In this document: positions 1 to 9,544 of the stretch, piece after piece | Layout: each line of letters starts with the position of its first letter | Position numbering within the stretch: position 1 is the first letter of the stretch | DNA from: Zygophlyctis sp. KS116 | Taxonomy: Eukaryota; Fungi; Chytridiomycota | Reading direction: 5' to 3' | Assembly: GCA_054661495.1 (NCBI GenBank) | Contig: BAAFSQ010000347.1 | Span: 1-9,544, forward strand | DNA: 9,544 nucleotides | The notes under the pieces: generated by a model | The model's input: only the letters and a program-made list of their open reading frames with translations | Told to the model about the DNA's origin: nothing | The model's database searches: none | Made by a program: the position numbers and the translations under genes

Positions 1-465
1 CAGCAAATCTAATGGCTTGGTTATCTCCAGCCGATGGATCCACCCTCGAGTCTTTTAGAAGCATTTTAACAATTTCGATATGGCCTTTTCCAGCAGCAAA
101 TCTAATGGCTTCGTTATCTCCAGCCGATGTATCCACCCTTGAGTCTTTCAGAAGCATTTCAACAATTTCAGTATGGCCATTTCCAGCAGCAAATCTAATG
201 GCTTGGTTATCTCCAGCCGATGGATCCACCCTCGAGTCTTTTAGAAGCATTTTAACAATTTCGATATGGCCTTTTCCAGCAGCAAATCTAATGGCTTCGT
301 TATCTCCAGCCGATGGATCCACCCTTGAGTCTTTCAGAAGCATTTTAACAATTTCAGTATGGCCATTTCTAGCAGAAAACCGAATGGCTTCATTGAATCT
401 TGCTGATGGATCGACTCTCGAATCTTTTAAAAGCATTTTTACGATATCAGTGCAACCATGACTGG
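1..465. repeat. 93-bp coding tandem repeat (ankyrin units) with a 186-bp A-B higher-order period
   Basis: The string cagcaaatctaatggc starts at 1, 94, 187 and 280. Unit 1-93 is identical to 187-279. Unit 94-186 differs from 280-372 at 3 positions. A more diverged unit follows at 373-465. Confidence 0.95.
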
Positions 466-858
466 CTGAATATCTAATAGCTGCATTATCCTGTATAGTT
501 GGATCAACTTTAGAATTATTTAATAAAATCTCGACGCTATCATAATATTTTCCTGCTAATGCTCTGAGTAATACTTGATCAAGTCCATTAGATTCAATCA
601 CCCCATTTAAGGGCAGTTTAACTTTTTTTGAATTGCCAATATTAGCTGCATTCTTAGAGTCTAAATCAATTATTGTCTGATTATTCTCTTGTGATGGCCC
701 GATTGGATCATTTTTTTTTCTATAATCAATAATAAAACCACTTACCCTGTAGAGAAGCAGCATGATGATCCATTTAATAGTAAAAGCTGAGATGTATAAA
801 ATGGATTGTAAAATGCAGATCGCAAGTGGATCTGTCGCTTGACAAGTCTAGATATCAT
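1..858 (-). CDS. Ankyrin-repeat protein (31-aa repeats) with a mitochondrial-presequence-like N-terminus; 3'-partial. Exons 858-746, 719-<1
   Basis: ATG at 858-856. A 26-nt intron at 745-720 (gtaagt...ttgattatag) joins the exons in frame. The translation is MISRLVKRQIHLRSAFYNPFYTSQLLLLNGSSCCFSTGKKNDP..., followed by repeats such as VDPSAGDNEAIRFAAGKGHIEIVKMLLKDSR carrying the ankyrin core A-x-x-G-H-x-E-I-V-K-x-L-L. The frame is open to the window edge. Confidence 0.88.
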
Positions 859-930: not shown

Positions 931-2157
931 ATGAAAAAGGGACTGTTGAATCTATCAATGGCCAGAAATTCATTTTGGGATTCTGCGATTCCCGATTCAA
1001 ACATGAAGAGTCATTATCTCGTCAGAGACTTCATTCATACCTGTTTATATGGAACTGCTGGTTATTTTACATCGCATGCATCTATATTGTCTCCCGACCC
1101 ATATGATTATAAAAGCTTCAAAGATCAGGATGCATTCCTTTCTCAGATTGGAAAAAGTTATTCTGTAGAGAGCGGTCAGATCTGGCACACGCCTTGTGAA
1201 ATATTTAAGCCTTGGTTTGGTAGTTGTATTGCCGAATATTTAGTTAAAAAGAGAAAATCAGACAAACTCATTATTTATGAAATGGGAGCTGGGAATGGGA
1301 CATTGATGTTTGATATTTTAGATTTGATTAGAGCCCGATACCCTTTACTTTATGCTAACTTAGAGTATAATATAATTGAAATTTCTCCTAGATTAGTTGA
1401 AATTCTAAAGGAAAAATCCAAGAATCATCATTCAGACAAGATAAATATTAAACAAATTTCAATTTTTGATTGGGATCAGCTTGAAGAACGGGAATGCTTC
1501 TTTTTAGGAATGGAAGTTATTGATAATTTTGCTCATGATGTCATCAGATATGATTTTAATACTCTTGAACCACTTCAGGCACATGTAATTGAAAGTGTTT
1601 CAAATGAATTAAGTGAAATTTATACTCCAGTCACTGATTCTTTAATTAAAAGATTCTTGGACTTAAGATCTAAAACTGAACATTCTTCTTTAAACAGTTG
1701 GAAACGGAATTTAAGTAGATTTATTCCTTTTGCACCTTCAATGACACAAAAAGAATTTATTCCAACAAAGTCTTTGGAATTCTTAGAAATCATGTTTAAA
1801 TTCTTTCCAAATCATTCACTTTTACTCTCTGATTTTACTAAATTAGACAGATGTGTTCCTGGAAAGTGTGGACCTGTTGTTCAAACAATGGTTGATGGAG
1901 TAATGTTACCGTGTACAACATATTTAGTAATATTTAAAGACTAATTCTAGTTAAAAGGCCCTTTTGATATCTTTTTTCCTACAGATTTTCAATTACTCTC
2001 CAAAATGTATCAAACGTTATCTAAAAAGACTGTGACTGTCTCCTCTTACTCTGAATTTCTACGATCGTGGCCTGATTCAAAGAAAACAATTGTTAGATCA
2101 GGAGAGAATCCAATGCTCAGTTTCTATGACAATTACGCATTTTTAGAAGCATATTAA
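931..2157 (+). CDS. SAM-dependent methyltransferase of the MidA/NDUFAF7 (DUF185) family, fungal YKL162C-like type, ~400 aa. Exons 931-1926, 1951-2157
   Basis: Motifs RDFIHTCLY..GYF, QIWHTPCEIFKPWFG, IYEMGAGNGTL, YNIIEISPRL and EVIDNFAHD. A 24-nt intron at 1927-1950 (gtaata...ctaattctag) restores the C-terminus FDIFFPTDF...SGENPMLSFYDN, ending at TAA 2155-2157. The start could alternatively be ATG 958. Confidence 0.88.
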
Positions 2158-2202: not shown

Positions 2203-3859
2203 ATGAATTTCTCTTCTGAAATTCTTAAAATATTTACAAAGCGACATGGTCTACAAGTCAATAAAGAAGGACTAGAATATTTATCAGGGATTTTAAATGA
2301 TTTATCAAGGGAAAATGTTGATATTTTGGATTCTTTGGATTTTATTGCGAAATCGTATTTACAATTCTCTAAAAATAATTCTAACATTGTAAACAAGACA
2401 TCGCTAGAGAAAGTTTATTTAGAAATTAAAAAGGCAGCGCTTCTAGAGCAAGGTGTGTCTTGCGGAGGGAATTATTTGGCGGTGTTGGACGCATTTAGTC
2501 TCCCAAAACTTGTATTTAAAGAAAAAGGATTTGTTGTAGATCATCAGAAATCTCCAAAATTACTTTCAGATGCATCGGAAAAGGCAAACATGTTTAAAGA
2601 TAGGTTTGATCTAATTTATCAAAGAATTCAAAGGAATGAAATGCTAAATTCTTCAATTAATGAATCTTCAATCACTCCTATTAAAAATTTAAATGGTAAA
2701 CCGCCAGGAAGTTATTTACTTTTTGGGATGTTGACTCAAATGAAGGAAGGTTTAGTATTTTTAGAAGATTTAGATTCTTCAATTGAACTAATTCTTGCTA
2801 AAGATACTTTAATGAAGGGTCCAGGAATGTTTACTTGTAATTCTTTTGTTCTGGTTCACGGGGATTATACAGATGATAAAAAGTTTTTTGTACAGGTTAT
2901 TGGAATGCCACCGCCAGAGCCAAGGAAGAAATCAAAACAGGCGTATGGGAATGATGTGGATTTCTTTGGTTCTCCAGATTCAATTTCTGATGAAGGGAGA
3001 TTATTAGAAATTGAAGCGAAATTATCAGATTCATTTTTTGTAATTCTATCAGATGTATGGTTAGATTCAGCAAGAGTTTTAAGCAAGTTGGAAGAACTTT
3101 TTAAAGGATTTAGTTTAGAGGATTCTGTTTTGCCTTTGGCATTTATATTTAATGGGAATTTTATTTCAAAGCCTTATACATTTGATTCTGAAGATTATCA
3201 AAAGTATAAAGATGGATTTCAGCAATTAGCAGATCTATTGGGTTCTTATCCTAAAATTTCAAGTTACTCGCATTTTATATTCGTTCCTGGACCTTTTGAT
3301 CCTTGGTGTGGTAGTATTTTGCCCAGACCAAGAATTCCAAAAGATTTGTCGTCTATATTATCTGATCGATTTGATAATATTCATTTTGCAAGTAATCCTG
3401 CGCGGATAAAGTTTTGTACAAAGGAAATTGTAGTTTTCAGAGAGGATTTGATGAATACTCTCAGAAGAAATTGTATTATTCCTCCCCTAGAGTCTGATGA
3501 ATACCCTTTAGAAAAACAGGTAAAATTCATTGTCTAAAATACAGCTTGTTTCTACGGTTCTTGATCAATCTCATCTTATTCCTGTTCCATTACAGGTCAG
3601 ACCTATATTCTGGTCTTTTGACCATGCACTTCGTCTCTACCCTCAGAGTCACTTGGTAAGTTTTTTTACATTTACAAATCAGTTAATTTTAGCTGATAAG
3701 TGTGAACCTTTTGTTGTTGAATATGAAGAAACTCAAGCAATTAATCCTGGATCTTTTGCCAACTCTGGAAGTTTTATGGTCTATCAACCAGCATTAAACG
3801 ATGTGCAGCCAAGGTAATGTTTATTTCCCAAATTCTAAAAATACAGTGAAATCAATTAA
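2203..3859 (+). CDS. DPB2: DNA polymerase epsilon subunit B, ~523 aa. Exons 2203-3519, 3545-3655, 3683-3813, 3847-3859
   Basis: Motifs LFGMLTQMKEG..FLED, LSDVWLD, FVPGPFDP, LPRPRIP, SNPARI, EIVVFRED, QSHLIP, DHALRLYP and NPGSF. GT-AG introns at 3520-3544 (25 nt), 3656-3682 (27 nt) and 3814-3846 (33 nt) join the two ORF-track pieces. The protein ends VQPSEIN*. Confidence 0.95.
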
Positions 3860-4084
3860 CCTCTTTTCATCTAGTATATTAGATATTTAGACTTACAGAA
3901 TTTCTGATGCAATCTTTGAATGCCTGAAACTCTTTAGCGCATGAGTCCTTTTGAGTCTCTGCAAATGTCTTTGAAATACATTTACCATAAGCTATTCCCT
4001 AGCATTAATTGAACTAGACCATACAGTTGATGCACATTCGGCAGTTGCTTTTCTGAGTCTTGCGATTGGACTCGCCCTATTCAT
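3856..4084 (-). CDS. NDUFAF8: Twin-CX9C protein, NDUFAF8 (C17orf89)-like complex I assembly factor, 58 aa. Exons 4084-4025, 3998-3897, 3870-3856
   Basis: Two 26-nt phase-0 introns (4024-3999 gtatgg...ttaatgctag; 3896-3871 gtaagt...ctaatatactag) give MNRASPIARLRKATAECASTGIAYGKCISKTFAETQKDSCAKEFQAFKDCIRNSMKRG. It has two exact CX9C motifs. AYGKC and KDSCAKEF match the AYGRC and KDFCAREF pattern I recall for NDUFAF8. Confidence 0.88.
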
Positions 4085-4094
4085 TACAAACCTT

Positions 4095-4633
4095 ATGGAC
4101 TTTGAGACTTTTAAGTCGGGCTGCAAGATGTTGTGTTGTAAAGATTGGACATGGTCGGATCAAGAAGAGATGCTCATATTTTGTAAGCGATTGGAAGTGG
4201 ATCAAGTAACAAATGATCCGGATGAATTTCCAGCTGATGATCCCGCACTCTACGCTCCCCCATTTAATAAACGCATCCTAAAGCTGGAAGTCCATATCGT
4301 GTATTCAGTAATTTGGGATGCACCCGAATGTTACTTAAATGTGTTTTGGGAAGATAGCGGTGAAATTTTAGAGATTGATCAGTTTTGTTCGCTGATAAAT
4401 AAACCAGTGCCAAAGCTATTATCTAAAAGGGTATTTTTAATTTAATTAATCTCTAGTTTCATCCAGTATATAATATTCCCTACTACAATCTACACTCTTG
4501 CCATTCTCAAGAGTGGATATTAGAAGGGGGATCATCAAATACCTTTATGAGATGGCTGACTACAGTGAATCAAATGTTGGATTTGGTTCCCATGATTGAT
4601 TTAGATCTAATATTAAAGGCCTATCCAAAATGA
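4095..4633 (+). CDS. ATG10: ATG10-like autophagy E2-like conjugating enzyme, ~170 aa. Exons 4095-4430, 4457-4633
   Basis: Contains an acidic DEFPADDPA loop and EVHIVYSVIWDAPECY (family pattern H-x-x-YS-x-x-Y-x-V-P-x-L-Y). After a 26-nt intron at 4431-4456 it reads HPVYNIPYYNLHSC (family pattern HP-x4-P-x3-LHPC), then a WL helix. Stop TGA at 4631-4633. Confidence 0.8.
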
Positions 4634-6472
4634 TTGGCCATTTGGATTATGAATTATTGATGATCCAAAATTTGGCGATTCAATTACCCATTCATACCAA
4701 ACCTTTTTCTGATTGGTTAATCTCCATAAATAGACGTTCAAGACTGAATCTTTAGAGAGAAGTACCGGATTATGAATAGGAAAATACATGGGAAACCATG
4801 AAAACATCCCTGGAGAGTGAGTTGAAGGAAGAATGGAAATTTTGACGTCTTTGTAGAGGATTGCTTCAAAATAGCCGCCAAGTCCATGCATTAAAGATGT
4901 AGCCTTGATTTTAAATTTCAATTTGCTAAAACGTTCATTATGAAGATTTGAATTCGTGTTTTTCAAACTTGAGACTGGGTGTTCAAAAGTCCAGACGAGA
5001 AGAGGATTAGATAATTCATCAACTTGATCAAATTTCACGACAAATGGAGTTTCATAGTTTTTCACTTGATTGTAGGATTTTATAGTTTCATATAATCTGG
5101 GGGAAGAAATAGGGACTATAAATGAGTCATATCTGGCAGGAATCATGATTCCTGTTTTAGATAAAACTCTTTCGACACCATCTAGACATTCTGGGCTAAG
5201 CTCGTTATCTCCAAAAGATCCAAGAAGTTCACTAACTATAATATCGATTTTCTCCATAGGATTCCATTCTCGCATATCGGCATTTACTACTGTGACTTTA
5301 TCTAGCCATTCAAGGTTTCTTTTAGATAGAGTTATAATAGCATTTGGGTTCTTTTCAACTGCATATATTTGAAGGTTAAGACCTGGTATTTTGCTAGCAG
5401 CGGAAAGTGCTCGATCCACTAATGGACCTCTTCCTGCTCCCACTACCGCTAAAACTCTTTAATTAGAATAAACATAGTCTTACAATTTCTGACCATTCAA
5501 CTCTACTTTCTTGTCACTTAATGCAGAATAAATCGCGTTTTCATATTCTTGATATTTTACTGGATCCATTTCAAAAGCTTCATAAGTAGCAGACTGCAAA
5601 TGATCCATCAATGGCTGCAGCGGCGTTTGCAAATAGTCTTCATATCCAAAAGTAATCTTTGCTGAAAGTCCCAATTCAGGCTGAGATTGTTTTAAAAATT
5701 TTAAATAATCCGCATATTTTGAAAACTCTTCTTGGTTTGTCAAACTATCAAATGAAACAATTGGTTCAATTCCTCTTCTCTCCAATTTCCAAAATAATTC
5801 ACATGCTTCCTGATTCAAGTATGGATTTCCATTCTTATTTTTCCTAAAAACCGACAGAGGAAAAAACAAAAATTTAATCGGTTCAACATTCCATTTTTCT
5901 AAAAGATTCACGTTGGAAGTATCATCTAGGATAAGTCCTAAATTCTTTAGAAATTAATTAAATACCAATCTTTAGATTCTGAGAAAAACTGCTCATCATC
6001 CTGATCTTATTCCATTGATCCCATGATTCAGAAGAAACAGGAGAAATAATTACCATCTATAATCAGCATAATTAAAAAATACAATTGATTTGCCAAGCTT
6101 GGAAGCAGATCTATTTAAAACTCTTGAAAAGTTTATGCATTCTCCAACTGGAAGATAAGTTGCCAAAACAGATACGCCACAATGAAGCATCCAGTCTACT
6201 TGTTTCATAAACAGGATTTCTGAATTTCTTCTGACGATCGGATCCAATGACTCCAAGTCAAGACATGGGCTAATAATTCCTAGTTTGCATCTTGCATCCG
6301 ATGCATCATTCAGAATCAGAGTATCGAGAGTCAGGTCGGGCAATGCATCATTAATGAGTAGCGATGTAATATCATCAGACATTATATGACATGCCTGAAA
6401 GTCAAACCCAAGTTCTCTTGCTACTGAGCACTGCAAAGGATAAGATCCGATTATATCAAACCCAATCTTCAT
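4613..6472 (-). CDS. PRMT5: Type II protein arginine methyltransferase PRMT5 (Skb1/Hsl7), ~592 aa. Exons 6472-6083, 6056-5966, 5937-5484, 5456-4613
   Basis: Motifs DYLQTPLQPLMDHL, TYEAFEMDPVKY, VVGAGRGPLV, VEKNPNA, IIVSELLGSFGDNELSPECLDG and MFSWFP. Introns at 6082-6057 (26 nt), 5965-5938 (28 nt) and 5483-5457 (27 nt) link three ORF-track fragments plus a 91-nt exon (SWDQWNKIR) in frame. Confidence 0.96.
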
Positions 6473-6482
6473 ACAAAAATTT

Positions 6483-6726
6483 ATGGTTAGAGGTAAATTG
6501 CCTACTGTAAGATCACTTTTTTAATCATTAGTATGCAGCATTAGGAGCAGCTGCACTTTATTGTGGGCATAGTAATTTCATGATCTAATCGTTAGAATTG
6601 GCACAATACCAAGACTGTAAATTAAAGGAATCTTTAGAATTGGAAACTGCAAAGATGGCGGACTATAATCCTCAGAATATGTTAAATGAATGGGATGAAT
6701 TAAAGGCTAAAGAGCGTCAAAGTTGA
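6483..6726 (+). CDS. Unidentified 64-aa microprotein with a short N-terminal hydrophobic segment. Exons 6483-6506, 6532-6571, 6596-6726
   Basis: Two introns match the local style: 6507-6531 gtaagatcacttttttaatcattag (25 nt) and 6572-6595 gtaatttcatgatctaatcgttag (24 nt). Splicing gives the open frame MVRGKLPTYAALGAAALYCGHKLAQYQDCKLKESLELETAKMADYNPQNMLNEWDELKAKERQS*, which fills the PRMT5-ITFG1 gap. No family recognised. Confidence 0.72.
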
Positions 6727-8735
6727 TCCGATGTAGTGATCTCCGACGCTCTAATTCGTCTTCTCTCTATTTATTATCAATAAAATGAAATTTACTTCTT
6801 CTTCTTTGTGAAGGCTGTAAATAACTCCACAAAGAAGGATCAGCATTGTTATGAGGACAATTGTTGTTCCAAAAATTGCAGATGTGTAAGCGACGATCAA
6901 CTGGATCTTCCATCTATGGTTAAATACATTAATAAGTTTACGTTCCCAAGTCCATCGATGGTATAATAATCATTCTTGAATTAGGAATTATTCCATGATA
7001 TACTTTGAAATAATCGGTCTAGGAATTATTAAAGATAAGTACGATATTTAATGGTATGCCAATGAATAAATCCTGAATGTAATTGCTTGTACGTCCCAAA
7101 CCAAATATTACATAAGGGGTCATGGCCTCCATATAATTCATTTGGGGAAGTTGAGCGACTTAAACTTTAAATTGGTAGATTACCTTGAATAGCTCTGATT
7201 GCCCCAAATGGATCAGAGACTGCGTATTTAAATGAAGCACCGGGATAAATGCTTCTAGAAGAACTTTGCACTAGTTTTAAATATAAAAATTGATTTACCT
7301 TGACTTTTTATAAACAAACCATCATAAAAGACATCATTAAAAATAATATAAGAAGCTTGACTAGAAGAGTTCATCCAGGTCGTAATAAGAAAATCAAGAG
7401 TTCCCTAGAATTTAGAGTCAAGATTTTTACATCGCCATTAAAATCTGCCCAAACTCCATGCATGTCTTTCCCAGGAATTGAATCAAAAGCTTTACTCCAT
7501 GCTGTATCCTCTACATAAGCTCTTCGCATTTTTGGATCTTTACACAAGGTAGGAGAGCAAGCCGTAGAACGAAGCATATAATAACGGTTGTTTTCAAACA
7601 ATGCCAAAATATCCGGAAATCCATCATGATTATAATCAACGATTTTAATGGTATAGCGAGCTTTGAATCCTTGAAATCTATCATTCGTATCCTTGAGCTT
7701 TAAATCTGATCCGATAATGTCTGGAACTGATATTAATTAGGGCAAAGTTACATTTATATATAACTGCTGTCTCTAATGAAACATCACTGGATTTTCCACA
7801 AAGATCCCTTCTACATTTCCCATTTTCACAATAAATTGATTCATTATTATGAAGTATTGACATATAGCAATAAGTATAACTGCAACTAGCATACACCAAG
7901 TCAATCATCCCATCAGAGTCCATATCACCTAACGCAAGATTATTTACATCCGTAGGAATCGTTATATCCTTTTCCAATAAAAATCCTCTCTCTGTATTAG
8001 AATAAATCCTAATATATTGCTTAGTTTTGAGCCAGCCACTAGCTTCACAAAATAAAAGCAAGTCTTTAATTGAGAACTTGTAAAAGTACCTGCCTTACAA
8101 TCTCCATTCAGATCAACCCACGCGCTTGAATGCGGATGTGCCAAAACGCATCCTTCAAGCCCATTTAAATGTGTTAAAAACGGGTCATTTCCATCAAGTG
8201 TCCAAAGAGAGAAATTTGAAGATCCTTTCAACTGTCCAAATAAGGAAATTGAAAAATTGCCAAAAAAATCCAAAGCAAACGGTTGTGCAAGCGACGAAGG
8301 AGGTAGATTGATCAAACTATACCCATCTCCATTATTTAAATACAATTTCTGTCTCAACTCATCATTTGATCCTTGTATTTGAACCAATACATCCAGTCTC
8401 CCATCCTGATTAAAATCAGCAGTTAGCACTAAAGATTAAAAACGCAACATTACCATTTTGAATTGGCGAATCATTGACATCAATATATGCCTCTAATTTA
8501 GCCAATATTTTTGAATCTCATAATTTAACTTATAAAATATACCAGTATTCATTGACCAAATTTCTACTTTAGTCTGTTTGGAGTTTATGACATACATTGA
8601 AGTTCTAAAATCAGATCATAAAGATTACCTTGAATCATCCCAATTCCCAAAGCTGCTCACATAGCCCGTTAGATCCGGAACTAATTGCACTCTCTGTGCA
8701 AGAAAACCGCATAAAAATAATAAAATAAATTTCAT
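6707..8735 (-). CDS. ITFG1: ITFG1/LINKIN (T-cell immunomodulatory protein)-like FG-GAP repeat type I membrane protein, ~580 aa. 12 exons: 8735-8629, 8604-8543, 8516-8454, 8428-8090, 8063-7752, 7726-7431, 7404-7299, 7270-7184, 7158-7043, 7018-6942, 6913-6796, 6766-6707
   Basis: Signal-like MKFILLFLCGFLA. Ca-binding FG-GAP loops DFNQDGRLD, DLNGDCKAD, DMDSDGMID, DYNHDGFPD and DFNGDGTLD. Family motifs HPHSSAWVD, AQLPQ, FGLGRTSNYI and IIPNS. A TM helix is followed by the tail REDELERRRSLHRINFDAL*. Eleven 24-29-nt GT-AG introns are all phase-consistent. Confidence 0.92.
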
Positions 8736-8927
8736 GACATTTAACACGCGATTTAACCATCAATTCATGATTTTATCATTTACTTTTAACCGCAGAAACT
8801 ATTCATTTTTAGAAAAGAGAATGCTATCTAATGCACTAGTGTAGATCAGCCCAAAACAGCCTAGATCAGTCCAAATCAGTCAAGATCAAACCAACTGCTA
8901 GGGTGACTTTCGCGTTTGGGTTTCAAA
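8736..8927. promoter_or_regulatory. Putative bidirectional promoter for ITFG1 and NDUFV2 with an inverted pair of TCGCGT motifs
   Basis: 192 bp between divergent ATGs. TCGCGT lies on each gene's sense strand: 8751-8746 (10 nt before the ITFG1 ATG) and 8910-8915 (12 nt before the NDUFV2 ATG). Function is inferred. Confidence 0.5.
8841..8895. repeat. Imperfect 10-bp tandem repeat (20-bp dimer) in the divergent intergenic region
   Basis: Consecutive blocks: gtagatcagc / ccaaaacagc / ctagatcagt / ccaaatcagt / caagatcaaa / ccaac. Confidence 0.75.
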
Positions 8928-9544
8928 ATGCGTTTAATCAGCAAGCGATTGTTTTCCGATAAGATATTTCAAGTAAGTTTAGCATATTGATATATTATAG
9001 CATCGGTCTTCTCCATCGGATTCAATCCCCTTTACTTTTACTCCAGAGAATTTAAAGAGAGCAGAAGCCATTTTAGCAAATTACCCACCACAGTACAAAT
9101 GTGCTGCTGCTCTACCGCTCTTGGATTTAGCTCAACGGCAGAATAATGGATGGACTTCACTCCCTGCAATGAATTATGTCGCAAAGTTTTTGGAAATGCC
9201 CCCAATGAGAATATATGAAGTTGCTACATTTTACACAATGTATAATCGGTAACACAATATTTTCTGAAAACAAGTGAACCAATCGGTAAATACTTTTTGC
9301 AAGTATGTACGACAACGCCTTGTGAATTATGTGGAGCATCGAATATTGTTAAAACAATCTCTGATCATTTGGGTATAAGTGTTGGGGAAACCACTAAAGA
9401 TGGTCTATTCACTTTAGTAGAAGTAGAATGTGCTGGAGCTTGTGTTAATGCACCTGTACTAGCAGTAAATGACGATTATTATGTATAAACAAGATGTTTC
9501 TAATGATTAGGAAGATTTGACACCACAAGCTACAATTTCAATTT
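8928..9544 (+). CDS. NDUFV2: NADH:ubiquinone oxidoreductase 24-kDa flavoprotein subunit 2; 3'-partial. Exons 8928-8972, 9001-9248, 9275-9482, 9511->9544
   Basis: Motifs [35 protein letters not shown], the [2Fe-2S] ligands CTTTPC and [10 protein letters not shown], and DDYYEDLTP. Introns at 8973-9000 (28 nt), 9249-9274 (26 nt) and 9483-9510 (28 nt). Confidence 0.97.

Follow-up and report, generated by a model that had tools for sequence, protein, structure and literature searches.

The 9,544-bp contig BAAFSQ010000347.1 of Zygophlyctis sp. KS116, analyzed here at its complete length and referred to as the window, contains a 6,533-bp block of six protein-coding genes in the order DPB2 (+), NDUFAF8-like (-), ATG10 (+), PRMT5 (-), a microprotein gene (+), and ITFG1 (-), in which only 20 bp belong to no gene span. 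The block is the tight tail of a genome-wide compaction: it is extreme, not unique, and it is no special cluster. The arrangement had been pointed out in an earlier note on this DNA; the feature is real, conserved, and well supported, and it is less singular than that note implied. The explanation that we consider probable is that the block represents the tight end of compaction throughout the genome of an intron-rich chytrid, with gene signals displaced into the neighboring genes.

Layout of the block and reality of the gene models

The window is a whole contig of a eukaryotic assembly (12.73 Mb, 1,175 contigs). All gene models were rebuilt from coordinates, and Pfam and database searches were done exon by exon. 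Two relatives, designated L002 and L004/L028, have 73 to 75% nucleotide identity to the window, with a synonymous divergence (dS) of 0.8 to 1.7. The features of the block are listed below; omega is the ratio of nonsynonymous to synonymous substitution rates.

2203..3859, + strand: DPB2/POLE2, 523 aa; PF04042 at E 3e-27; omega 0.03-0.05
3520-3544, 3656-3682, and 3814-3846, + strand: the DPB2 introns; the last exon is 13 nt (SEIN and stop)
3856..3859: TTAA, in which the modeled DPB2 and NDUFAF8 stops overlap by 4 bp
3856..4084, - strand: NDUFAF8-like twin-CX9C protein, 58 aa; introns 3999-4024 and 3871-3896; omega 0.11-0.16
4085..4094: head-to-head spacer NDUFAF8/ATG10, 10 bp
4095..4633, + strand: ATG10 (E2-like autophagy enzyme), 170 aa; intron 4431-4456; omega 0.18-0.21
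4613..4633: double-coding overlap of the ATG10 and PRMT5 C termini, 21 bp; equal in L002 and L028
4613..6472, - strand: PRMT5, 592 aa; introns 6057-6082, 5938-5965, and 5457-5483; omega 0.11
6473..6482: head-to-head spacer PRMT5/microprotein, 10 bp
6483..6726, + strand: microprotein, 64 aa; introns 6507-6531 and 6572-6595; omega 0.37-0.53
6707..6726: double-coding overlap of the microprotein and ITFG1 C termini, 20 bp; equal in L002 and L028
6707..8735, - strand: ITFG1/LINKIN, 580 aa; 11 introns of 24-29 nt; omega 0.06-0.10

All six models are open, with no internal stop across 22 GT-AG introns of 24 to 33 nt each (3.7 introns per kb of coding sequence [CDS]), and upstream of each of the six starts the reading frame reaches a stop without meeting another ATG. 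The junctions are, in order, -4, +10, -21, +10, and -20 bp, negative values being overlaps. It is the strict strand alternation that makes it possible for the intergenic sum to reach 20 bp. A metagenome copy from ENA at 96% identity (L003) repeats every one of these junctions, and since it comes from an independent sample, the block is no assembly artifact. The alternation, the 20 bp of intergenic DNA in 6.5 kb, and the 10 bp at both head-to-head junctions claimed in the earlier note were thus recovered in the rebuilt models as well as in L003, and the CDS overlap that it reported at each tail-to-tail junction was found, at lengths of 4, 21, and 20 bp, in all of three lineages.

With the window held out, a gene finder that had learned from 20 other contigs recovered all six block genes and 22 of 23 introns. 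It departed from the earlier reading at two places. The DPB2 stop was placed at 3817 (gap of 38 bp), skipping the 13-nt last exon, and the ATG10 start was placed at 4128, 33 nt later (gap of 43 bp). The relatives' sequences favor the reader's DPB2 end and ATG10 start over those of the gene finder. For instance, the 13-nt exon is kept behind a divergent 24- to 33-nt intron in both L002 and L004/L028; Gorgonomyces, Terramyces, and Globomyces also have the terminal intron, and for Globomyces the equivalent last exon is part of the NCBI model. Likewise, the first ATG and the N terminus of ATG10 are conserved in L002.

The gene names fared unevenly. Pfam supports DPB2, ATG10 (PF03987 on both exons), PRMT5 (PF17286 at E 4e-58, PF05185, and PF17285), and ITFG1 (FG-GAP matches in the window and C2_ITFG1 in the L028 orthologue), while the 58-aa product is shown only as a twin-CX9C protein, for which the name NDUFAF8 is putative and taken from a motif resemblance. 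Its CX9C match has an E value of 6e-5, its CX9C/CHCH Pfam matches are under the curated cutoffs, it scores 0.91 to fungal Cx9C clusters in the Atlas, and homologues are present in Gorgonomyces and Terramyces. In the microprotein, a single N-terminal segment is weakly hydrophobic and the tail is charged. It gave no Pfam match, its exon 3 gave no Atlas match, and a database search returned a single match, 95% identical; its open reading frame and both intron positions are retained in L002 and L028. Substitution patterns show both small genes, the NDUFAF8-like and the microprotein gene, to be under purifying selection.

Conservation of the block in relatives

L002 and L004/L028 retain the gene order, the intron positions, and the open frames, and their introns have diverged in both sequence and length. 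In the window, L002, and L028 lineages alike, the tail-to-tail overlaps measure exactly 4, 21, and 20 bp. Beyond these, the cultured chytrid Gorgonomyces haynaldii (46% GC) has the order NDUFAF7 (+), DPB2 (+), NDUFAF8 (-), ATG10 (+), with five-gene junctions of -1 (TGATG), -4 (CTAG), +19, and -24 bp, the last being an overlap of ATG10 with Maf. In cultured Terramyces JEL0728, DPB2, NDUFAF8, and ATG10 remain neighbors, separated by 62 and 11 bp, and NDUFAF7 is inverted; the contig with these genes has two annotated DPB2 copies. Pfam confirmed the ATG10 orthologues of both species. The stop tetranucleotide shared by DPB2 and NDUFAF8 is CTAA in L002 and L028 and CTAG in Gorgonomyces. This 4-bp overlap may be either ancestral or convergent. 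The gene order was not found near DPB2 in Globomyces, Powellomyces, Rhizophlyctis, or two environmental loci.

Both the NDUFAF8-like and the ATG10 genes are omitted from the NCBI annotations of Gorgonomyces and Terramyces. In Gorgonomyces (GCA_025526955.1), the annotated 651-aa DPB2 (L026:10001-12323) fuses into part of ATG10, and inside this model lie an unannotated, intronless 52-aa NDUFAF8-like gene (11863-11705, -) and ATG10 (11883-12323, +). In Terramyces, an annotated 1.7-kb gap harbors at L087:9708-10500 the NDUFAF8-like gene, ATG10, and a 52-aa transmembrane (TM) microprotein, all unannotated. A 60-aa gene resembling this TM microprotein, also unannotated, lies upstream of Globomyces DPB2 (L025:9400-10000, -). 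Homology of the window's microprotein to these small TM genes was considered and is unsupported (hhalign probability of 1.1%).

The organism, a lake dweller, is by sequence comparison a chytrid belonging to Rhizophydiales or a sister group. The closest named DPB2 matches are chytrids at 40 to 46% identity, and a quick one-gene DPB2 tree, which contained no rozellid rows and is not decisive on order, placed the window lineage, which has a long branch, among the chytrids as the sister of four Rhizophydiales (SH-aLRT, the Shimodaira-Hasegawa-like approximate likelihood ratio test, 88). The DPB2 matches, the tree, and the microsynteny with Gorgonomyces and Terramyces gave no placement in Microsporidia or Rozellomycota. 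The microsporidian framing of the earlier note is therefore misplaced, and comparison with microsporidia is one of analogy, not kinship.

Compaction across the genome

To place the block, 192 kb of the genome (1.5% of the assembly) was annotated with our own gene predictor. This sample was 83% CDS, 5% intron, and 12% spacer, the spacer fraction being 9.6% in pieces of contigs of at least 15 kb. Introns were mostly 23 to 31 nt, with 338 of them in 154 kb of CDS (~2.2 per kb of CDS). Median gaps were 38 bp for tail-to-tail (n = 23), 84 bp for tandem (n = 53), and 181 bp for head-to-head (n = 18) junctions. Spacers of ~100 bp with some overlapping CDSs, the pattern of a microsporidian-type compact genome, were thus present; massive gene and intron loss was not found, given these intron counts and the presence of complex I, autophagy, and PRMT5 genes. 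The earlier proposal of compaction without gene or intron loss agrees with these figures and with the still higher intron density of the block.

Other junctions in the sample are similarly tight, including head-to-head gaps of 4 and 24 bp and tail-to-tail values of -4 to +3 bp, most of them with Pfam-confirmed genes. The 4-bp gap, at L012:5812-5815, separates a sulfate permease gene from a DUF4442 gene. A second very tight six-gene run, with UreG-like, eRF3-like, and WD40 genes (L016:61-5924), has an intergenic sum of 101 bp, making one such run among the 24 in the sample. When junction distances were resampled, the probability of a sum of 20 bp or less was 1.7e-4 and that of five strand switches was 0.016, and ~0.02 runs as tight as 20 bp would be expected per genome, assuming roughly 7,000 genes (our own estimate). 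In a like-for-like comparison, in which the window is given the 91 bp that the predictor itself finds there, ~0.7 runs are expected per genome. The latter figure is the fair one, because the predictor misses microexons everywhere. Start-to-start and stop-to-stop distances by orientation, which the earlier note had wanted computed genome-wide, were computed on the sample, and they put the block in the tight tail without making it singular.

Candidate poly(A) signals within neighboring genes

Because the conserved stops overlap, sense-antisense transcript overlap at the 3' ends follows logically, as the earlier note had argued. AATAAA was the commonest hexamer after predicted stops in the sample (30 of 104 in sense versus 17 in antisense; 9 overlap the stop). 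Two candidate polyadenylation [poly(A)] signals lie within the block.

3820..3825, - strand: AATAAA, candidate NDUFAF8 poly(A) signal, in the last DPB2 intron, 30 nt past the NDUFAF8 stop
6779..6784, + strand: AATAAA, candidate microprotein poly(A) signal, in the last ITFG1 intron (6767-6795), 52 nt past the microprotein stop

The first is retained in the window, L002, and L028 at 18 to 30 nt past the NDUFAF8 stop within an intron that has diverged, and the second is retained at +50 to +53 in the three lineages. An opposite-strand AATAAA was kept in all three lineages in only 2 of 15 orthologous introns, and both lie just past the stop of the convergent neighbor, compared to 0.03 AATAAA-conserving intron triples expected from composition-matched shuffles. 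This conservation in those two introns only means that the poly(A) signals of the two small genes are likely to sit in the neighbor's last intron. Terramyces has an AATAAA 13 nt past the NDUFAF8 stop, a similar distance, within its 62-bp spacer, as expected if the spacer had been squeezed out and the intron had taken over.

Several observations weigh against this reading of the 3' ends. The expectation of 0.03 overstates independence, since the lineages compared have a common ancestry; 13% of all introns contain TTTATT; convergent terminal introns showed no clear excess of it in the sample (2 of 8 versus 41 of 322); and Gorgonomyces has only A-rich variants at the place of the NDUFAF8 signal. 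Also, no conserved AATAAA was found near the stop of DPB2, ATG10, PRMT5, or ITFG1. PRMT5 has a weaker candidate 161 to 166 nt downstream, in the ATG10 intron; for DPB2, ATG10, and ITFG1, other signals or read-through must apply. The genome-wide figures, moreover, rest on our own predictor and 1.5% of the assembly.

Head-to-head junctions and 5' ends

The spacing expected of bidirectional pairs was found at both head-to-head junctions, each 10 bp in the window. The NDUFAF8/ATG10 gap is 10 to 19 bp in four lineages (12 bp in L002, 19 bp in Gorgonomyces, and 11 bp in Terramyces) and possibly an overlap in a fifth, L004/L028, where it is -2 if the first ATG is used, the starts overlapping as CATG. 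This CATG lies at L004:3620-3640 and at ~1690 on the reverse strand of L028, where the ATG10 start aligned to that of the window is now TTG. The PRMT5/microprotein gap is not fixed in length, L002 having 51 bp and L028 having 18 bp at this junction. A fixed 10-bp rule for head-to-head junctions was accordingly rejected.

Upstream regions in the sample were A rich at -3 to -1, and scattered CGCG and TGACG words were enriched before starts; both words are absent from the two 10-bp spacers. No positioned C motif resembling the CCC-like motif before ATG was found in the upstream scan of the sample. Two results count against displaced promoters: no positioned promoter motif was found at the head-to-head junctions, and 4-fold sites near them were not extra conserved (23 of 55 versus 269 of 621; low power). 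For a shared bidirectional element, neither a conserved spacer motif nor a synonymous footprint was seen, again with low power. Overlap of transcripts at the 5' ends is not obligatory, because 10 bp could accommodate 5' untranslated regions (UTRs) of <7 nt such as those of Encephalitozoon (PMC2803860). The claim that signals must lie inside neighboring genes therefore holds in part: two poly(A) candidates are conserved in the neighbors' introns, and the scans of the 5' ends found nothing to place the promoters and starts there.

Explanations for the block

In the scenario that we consider probable, spacers and introns shrank genome-wide, as is observed in the sample, with genes and intron positions kept. 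Shrinkage went on until, in the block, convergent genes shared 4 to 21 bp of coding sequence and divergent starts stood 10 bp apart. Conservation suggests that each gene would still be its own RNA polymerase II (Pol II) unit, with 3' ends running antisense into the neighbor and using AATAAA; for the two small genes, the signal would be in the neighbor's last AT-rich intron, the sole noncoding DNA within reach. Divergent pairs may initiate from one very short common zone; their 5' UTRs would then be only a few nucleotides long, or their starts would lie inside the opposite gene, and promoter contacts would spill into the neighbor. With signals inside neighbors, pairs would become hard to separate, which may be why DPB2-NDUFAF8-ATG10 stays together across Rhizophydiales.

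Loose run-on transcription is an unlikely alternative to this scenario. Genes would then have no gene-specific boundaries, and leaky termination with multigene and antisense RNAs would be tolerated, as in Antonospora and in Encephalitozoon spores. Such overrun is documented in compact fungal relatives (PMC2803860), and four of the six block genes are without a conserved AATAAA near the stop; the conserved AATAAA of the other two and the genome-wide enrichment after stops argue for defined ends, and a single polycistronic mRNA for the block is excluded by strict alternation. For the same reason, no co-oriented genes that could share one transcript, as in an operon, were found. Less probable still is a selected regulatory module, in which the 10- to 19-bp NDUFAF8/ATG10 spacer would be a minimal bidirectional initiator and antisense overlap would couple or limit neighbors in complex I assembly, autophagy, and replication. 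It would account for a spacing that lasts across lineages with DPB2 only ~40% identical, when typical head-to-head gaps are ~180 bp, and NDUFAF7, NDUFAF8, and NDUFV2 all lie inside 8.6 kb. However, the spacer sequence is unconserved, the PRMT5/microprotein gap can be as short as 10 or as long as 51 bp, and the neighborhoods of DPB2 in Globomyces, Powellomyces, and Rhizophlyctis do not show the order; the genes have no common pathway, and resampling predicts roughly one run of such tightness per genome. The block genes need not be functionally linked.

That the small genes or terminal exons are unreal, leaving true spacers of 40 to 240 bp, seems very improbable. The predictor did take the unspliced DPB2 end and the later ATG10 start, and the microprotein has no family and an omega of merely 0.37 to 0.53. 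Against such an artifact, the introns have changed in both sequence and length without loss of open frames or intron positions, the NDUFAF8-like gene has an omega of 0.11 to 0.16 and homologues in two cultured chytrids, and the DPB2 terminal exon appears in the Globomyces annotation. Apparent overlaps of the Blastocystis type, with stops made by polyadenylation, were also rejected: genomic stops are present, overlap lengths are equal in three lineages, and the C termini match those of relatives.

Flanking genes and other observations

Outside the block, the window contains the following.

931..2157, + strand: NDUFAF7/MidA-type methyltransferase, 400 aa, one intron; PF02636 at E 2e-28
8736..8927: ITFG1/NDUFV2 head-to-head spacer, 192 bp, typical of the genome

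NDUFAF7 lies 45 bp upstream of DPB2, an adjacency common to Gorgonomyces and inverted in Terramyces. In L004:1-1581, hAT transposase pieces stand in place of NDUFAF7 directly upstream of DPB2. P0085 was considered as a spliced transcript and rejected, since its contig, L004, retains introns and is DNA. Three complex I-related genes occur within 8.6 kb: NDUFAF7 (931-2157), the NDUFAF8-like gene (3856-4084), and NDUFV2 (8928-9488+); the first two remain close together in Gorgonomyces and Terramyces. The ITFG1/NDUFV2 spacer has two CGCG elements (8747-8750 and 8911-8914; ACGCGA and TTTCGCG) that are conserved in L002 though the spacer has diverged, and which we take to resemble E2F/SBF/MBF sites. 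At the start of the window (1-760, -) is an ankyrin-repeat gene with near-identical repeats, truncated by the contig end.

The acceptor of ITFG1 intron 2 (8517-8542, -) is GAG, which is rare, and CAG in the L002 orthologue; one ITFG1 intron in L028 seems to begin with GC. A search of metagenomes for related loci returned distant PRMT5 loci only, the best segments being 33 to 77% identical and full-length matches <50%; these were set aside. Gorgonomyces has a lone PRMT5 3' fragment (L026:6280-6429; the last ~45 codons and stop), flanked by histone and MTHFR genes and located 2.3 kb upstream of NDUFAF7, possibly a remnant of older PRMT5 linkage. An Rfam search of the window gave no matches.

Comparison with known compact genomes and meaning

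The architecture is of a known kind, with precedents in microsporidia, Paramecium, and Ostreococcus, and no description of such packing in chytrids was found in the literature searched, which covered few subscription papers. Chlorarachniophyte nucleomorphs have tiny introns at high density and overlapping transcripts; they resemble the chytrid in their dense tiny introns and differ in being relict organelle nuclei with a few hundred genes. In Encephalitozoon, control elements are displaced into adjacent genes, 5' UTRs are <7 nt, AAUAAA is used, and overrun occurs (PMC2803860); mean spacers of 115 to 119 bp with overlapping genes are described in PMC4355639, and short spacers correlate with synteny (PMC2099475). 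The chytrid is like Encephalitozoon and Antonospora in its ~100-bp spacers, some CDS overlaps, AAUAAA, probable displaced signals, and gene order held at short spacers. However, those genomes have ~2,000 genes and few introns, most genes and introns having been lost, whereas the chytrid, with a 12.7-Mb assembly, carries complex I genes in its nucleus and has 2 to 4 introns for each kb of CDS, which can host signals of neighbors, and no triple-C promoter motif stood out in it.

The Paramecium tetraurelia macronucleus already provides a case of compaction combined with abundant tiny introns. It is likewise ~80% coding with ~25-nt introns, a full gene repertoire, and divergent pairs that have wider average spacing than others; it differs in a mean spacer of 352 bp, in being a somatic genome made by DNA elimination, and in belonging to an unrelated lineage (PMC8997361). 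Ostreococcus has a similar size (12.6 to 13.2 Mb), a gene per 1.6 to 1.7 kb, spacers of <200 bp, and opposite-strand 3' overlaps, but only 20 to 25% of its transcripts have introns, averaging 188 bp (PMC2367439). Blastocystis is intron rich, with 30-nt introns and apparent 3' CDS overlaps, many of which are artifacts of polyadenylation-made stops (PMC5608401).

Possible, though doubtful at this point, is that Rhizophydiales-like chytrids make up a class of genomes, so far undescribed, that are dense in introns and have near-zero spacers. Tiny terminal introns would there host the poly(A) signals of convergent neighbors, and divergent genes, their starts 10 bp apart or overlapping as CATG, would have no intergenic promoter. 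If this were true, such introns would be locked in by the neighbor's needs, which would newly explain why introns and gene order persist.

What the block means for fungi is that compaction is separable from reduction, with spacers near microsporidian size and both genes and introns kept. It offers a base-level hypothesis for where a eukaryote places its poly(A) signals and promoters once spacers vanish, and since the arrangement is common to two cultured chytrids, Pol II initiation on divergent genes 10 to 19 bp apart becomes addressable. Finally, public chytrid annotations miss or fuse the NDUFAF8-like and ATG10 genes, which bears on inferences of gene loss in complex I assembly and autophagy.

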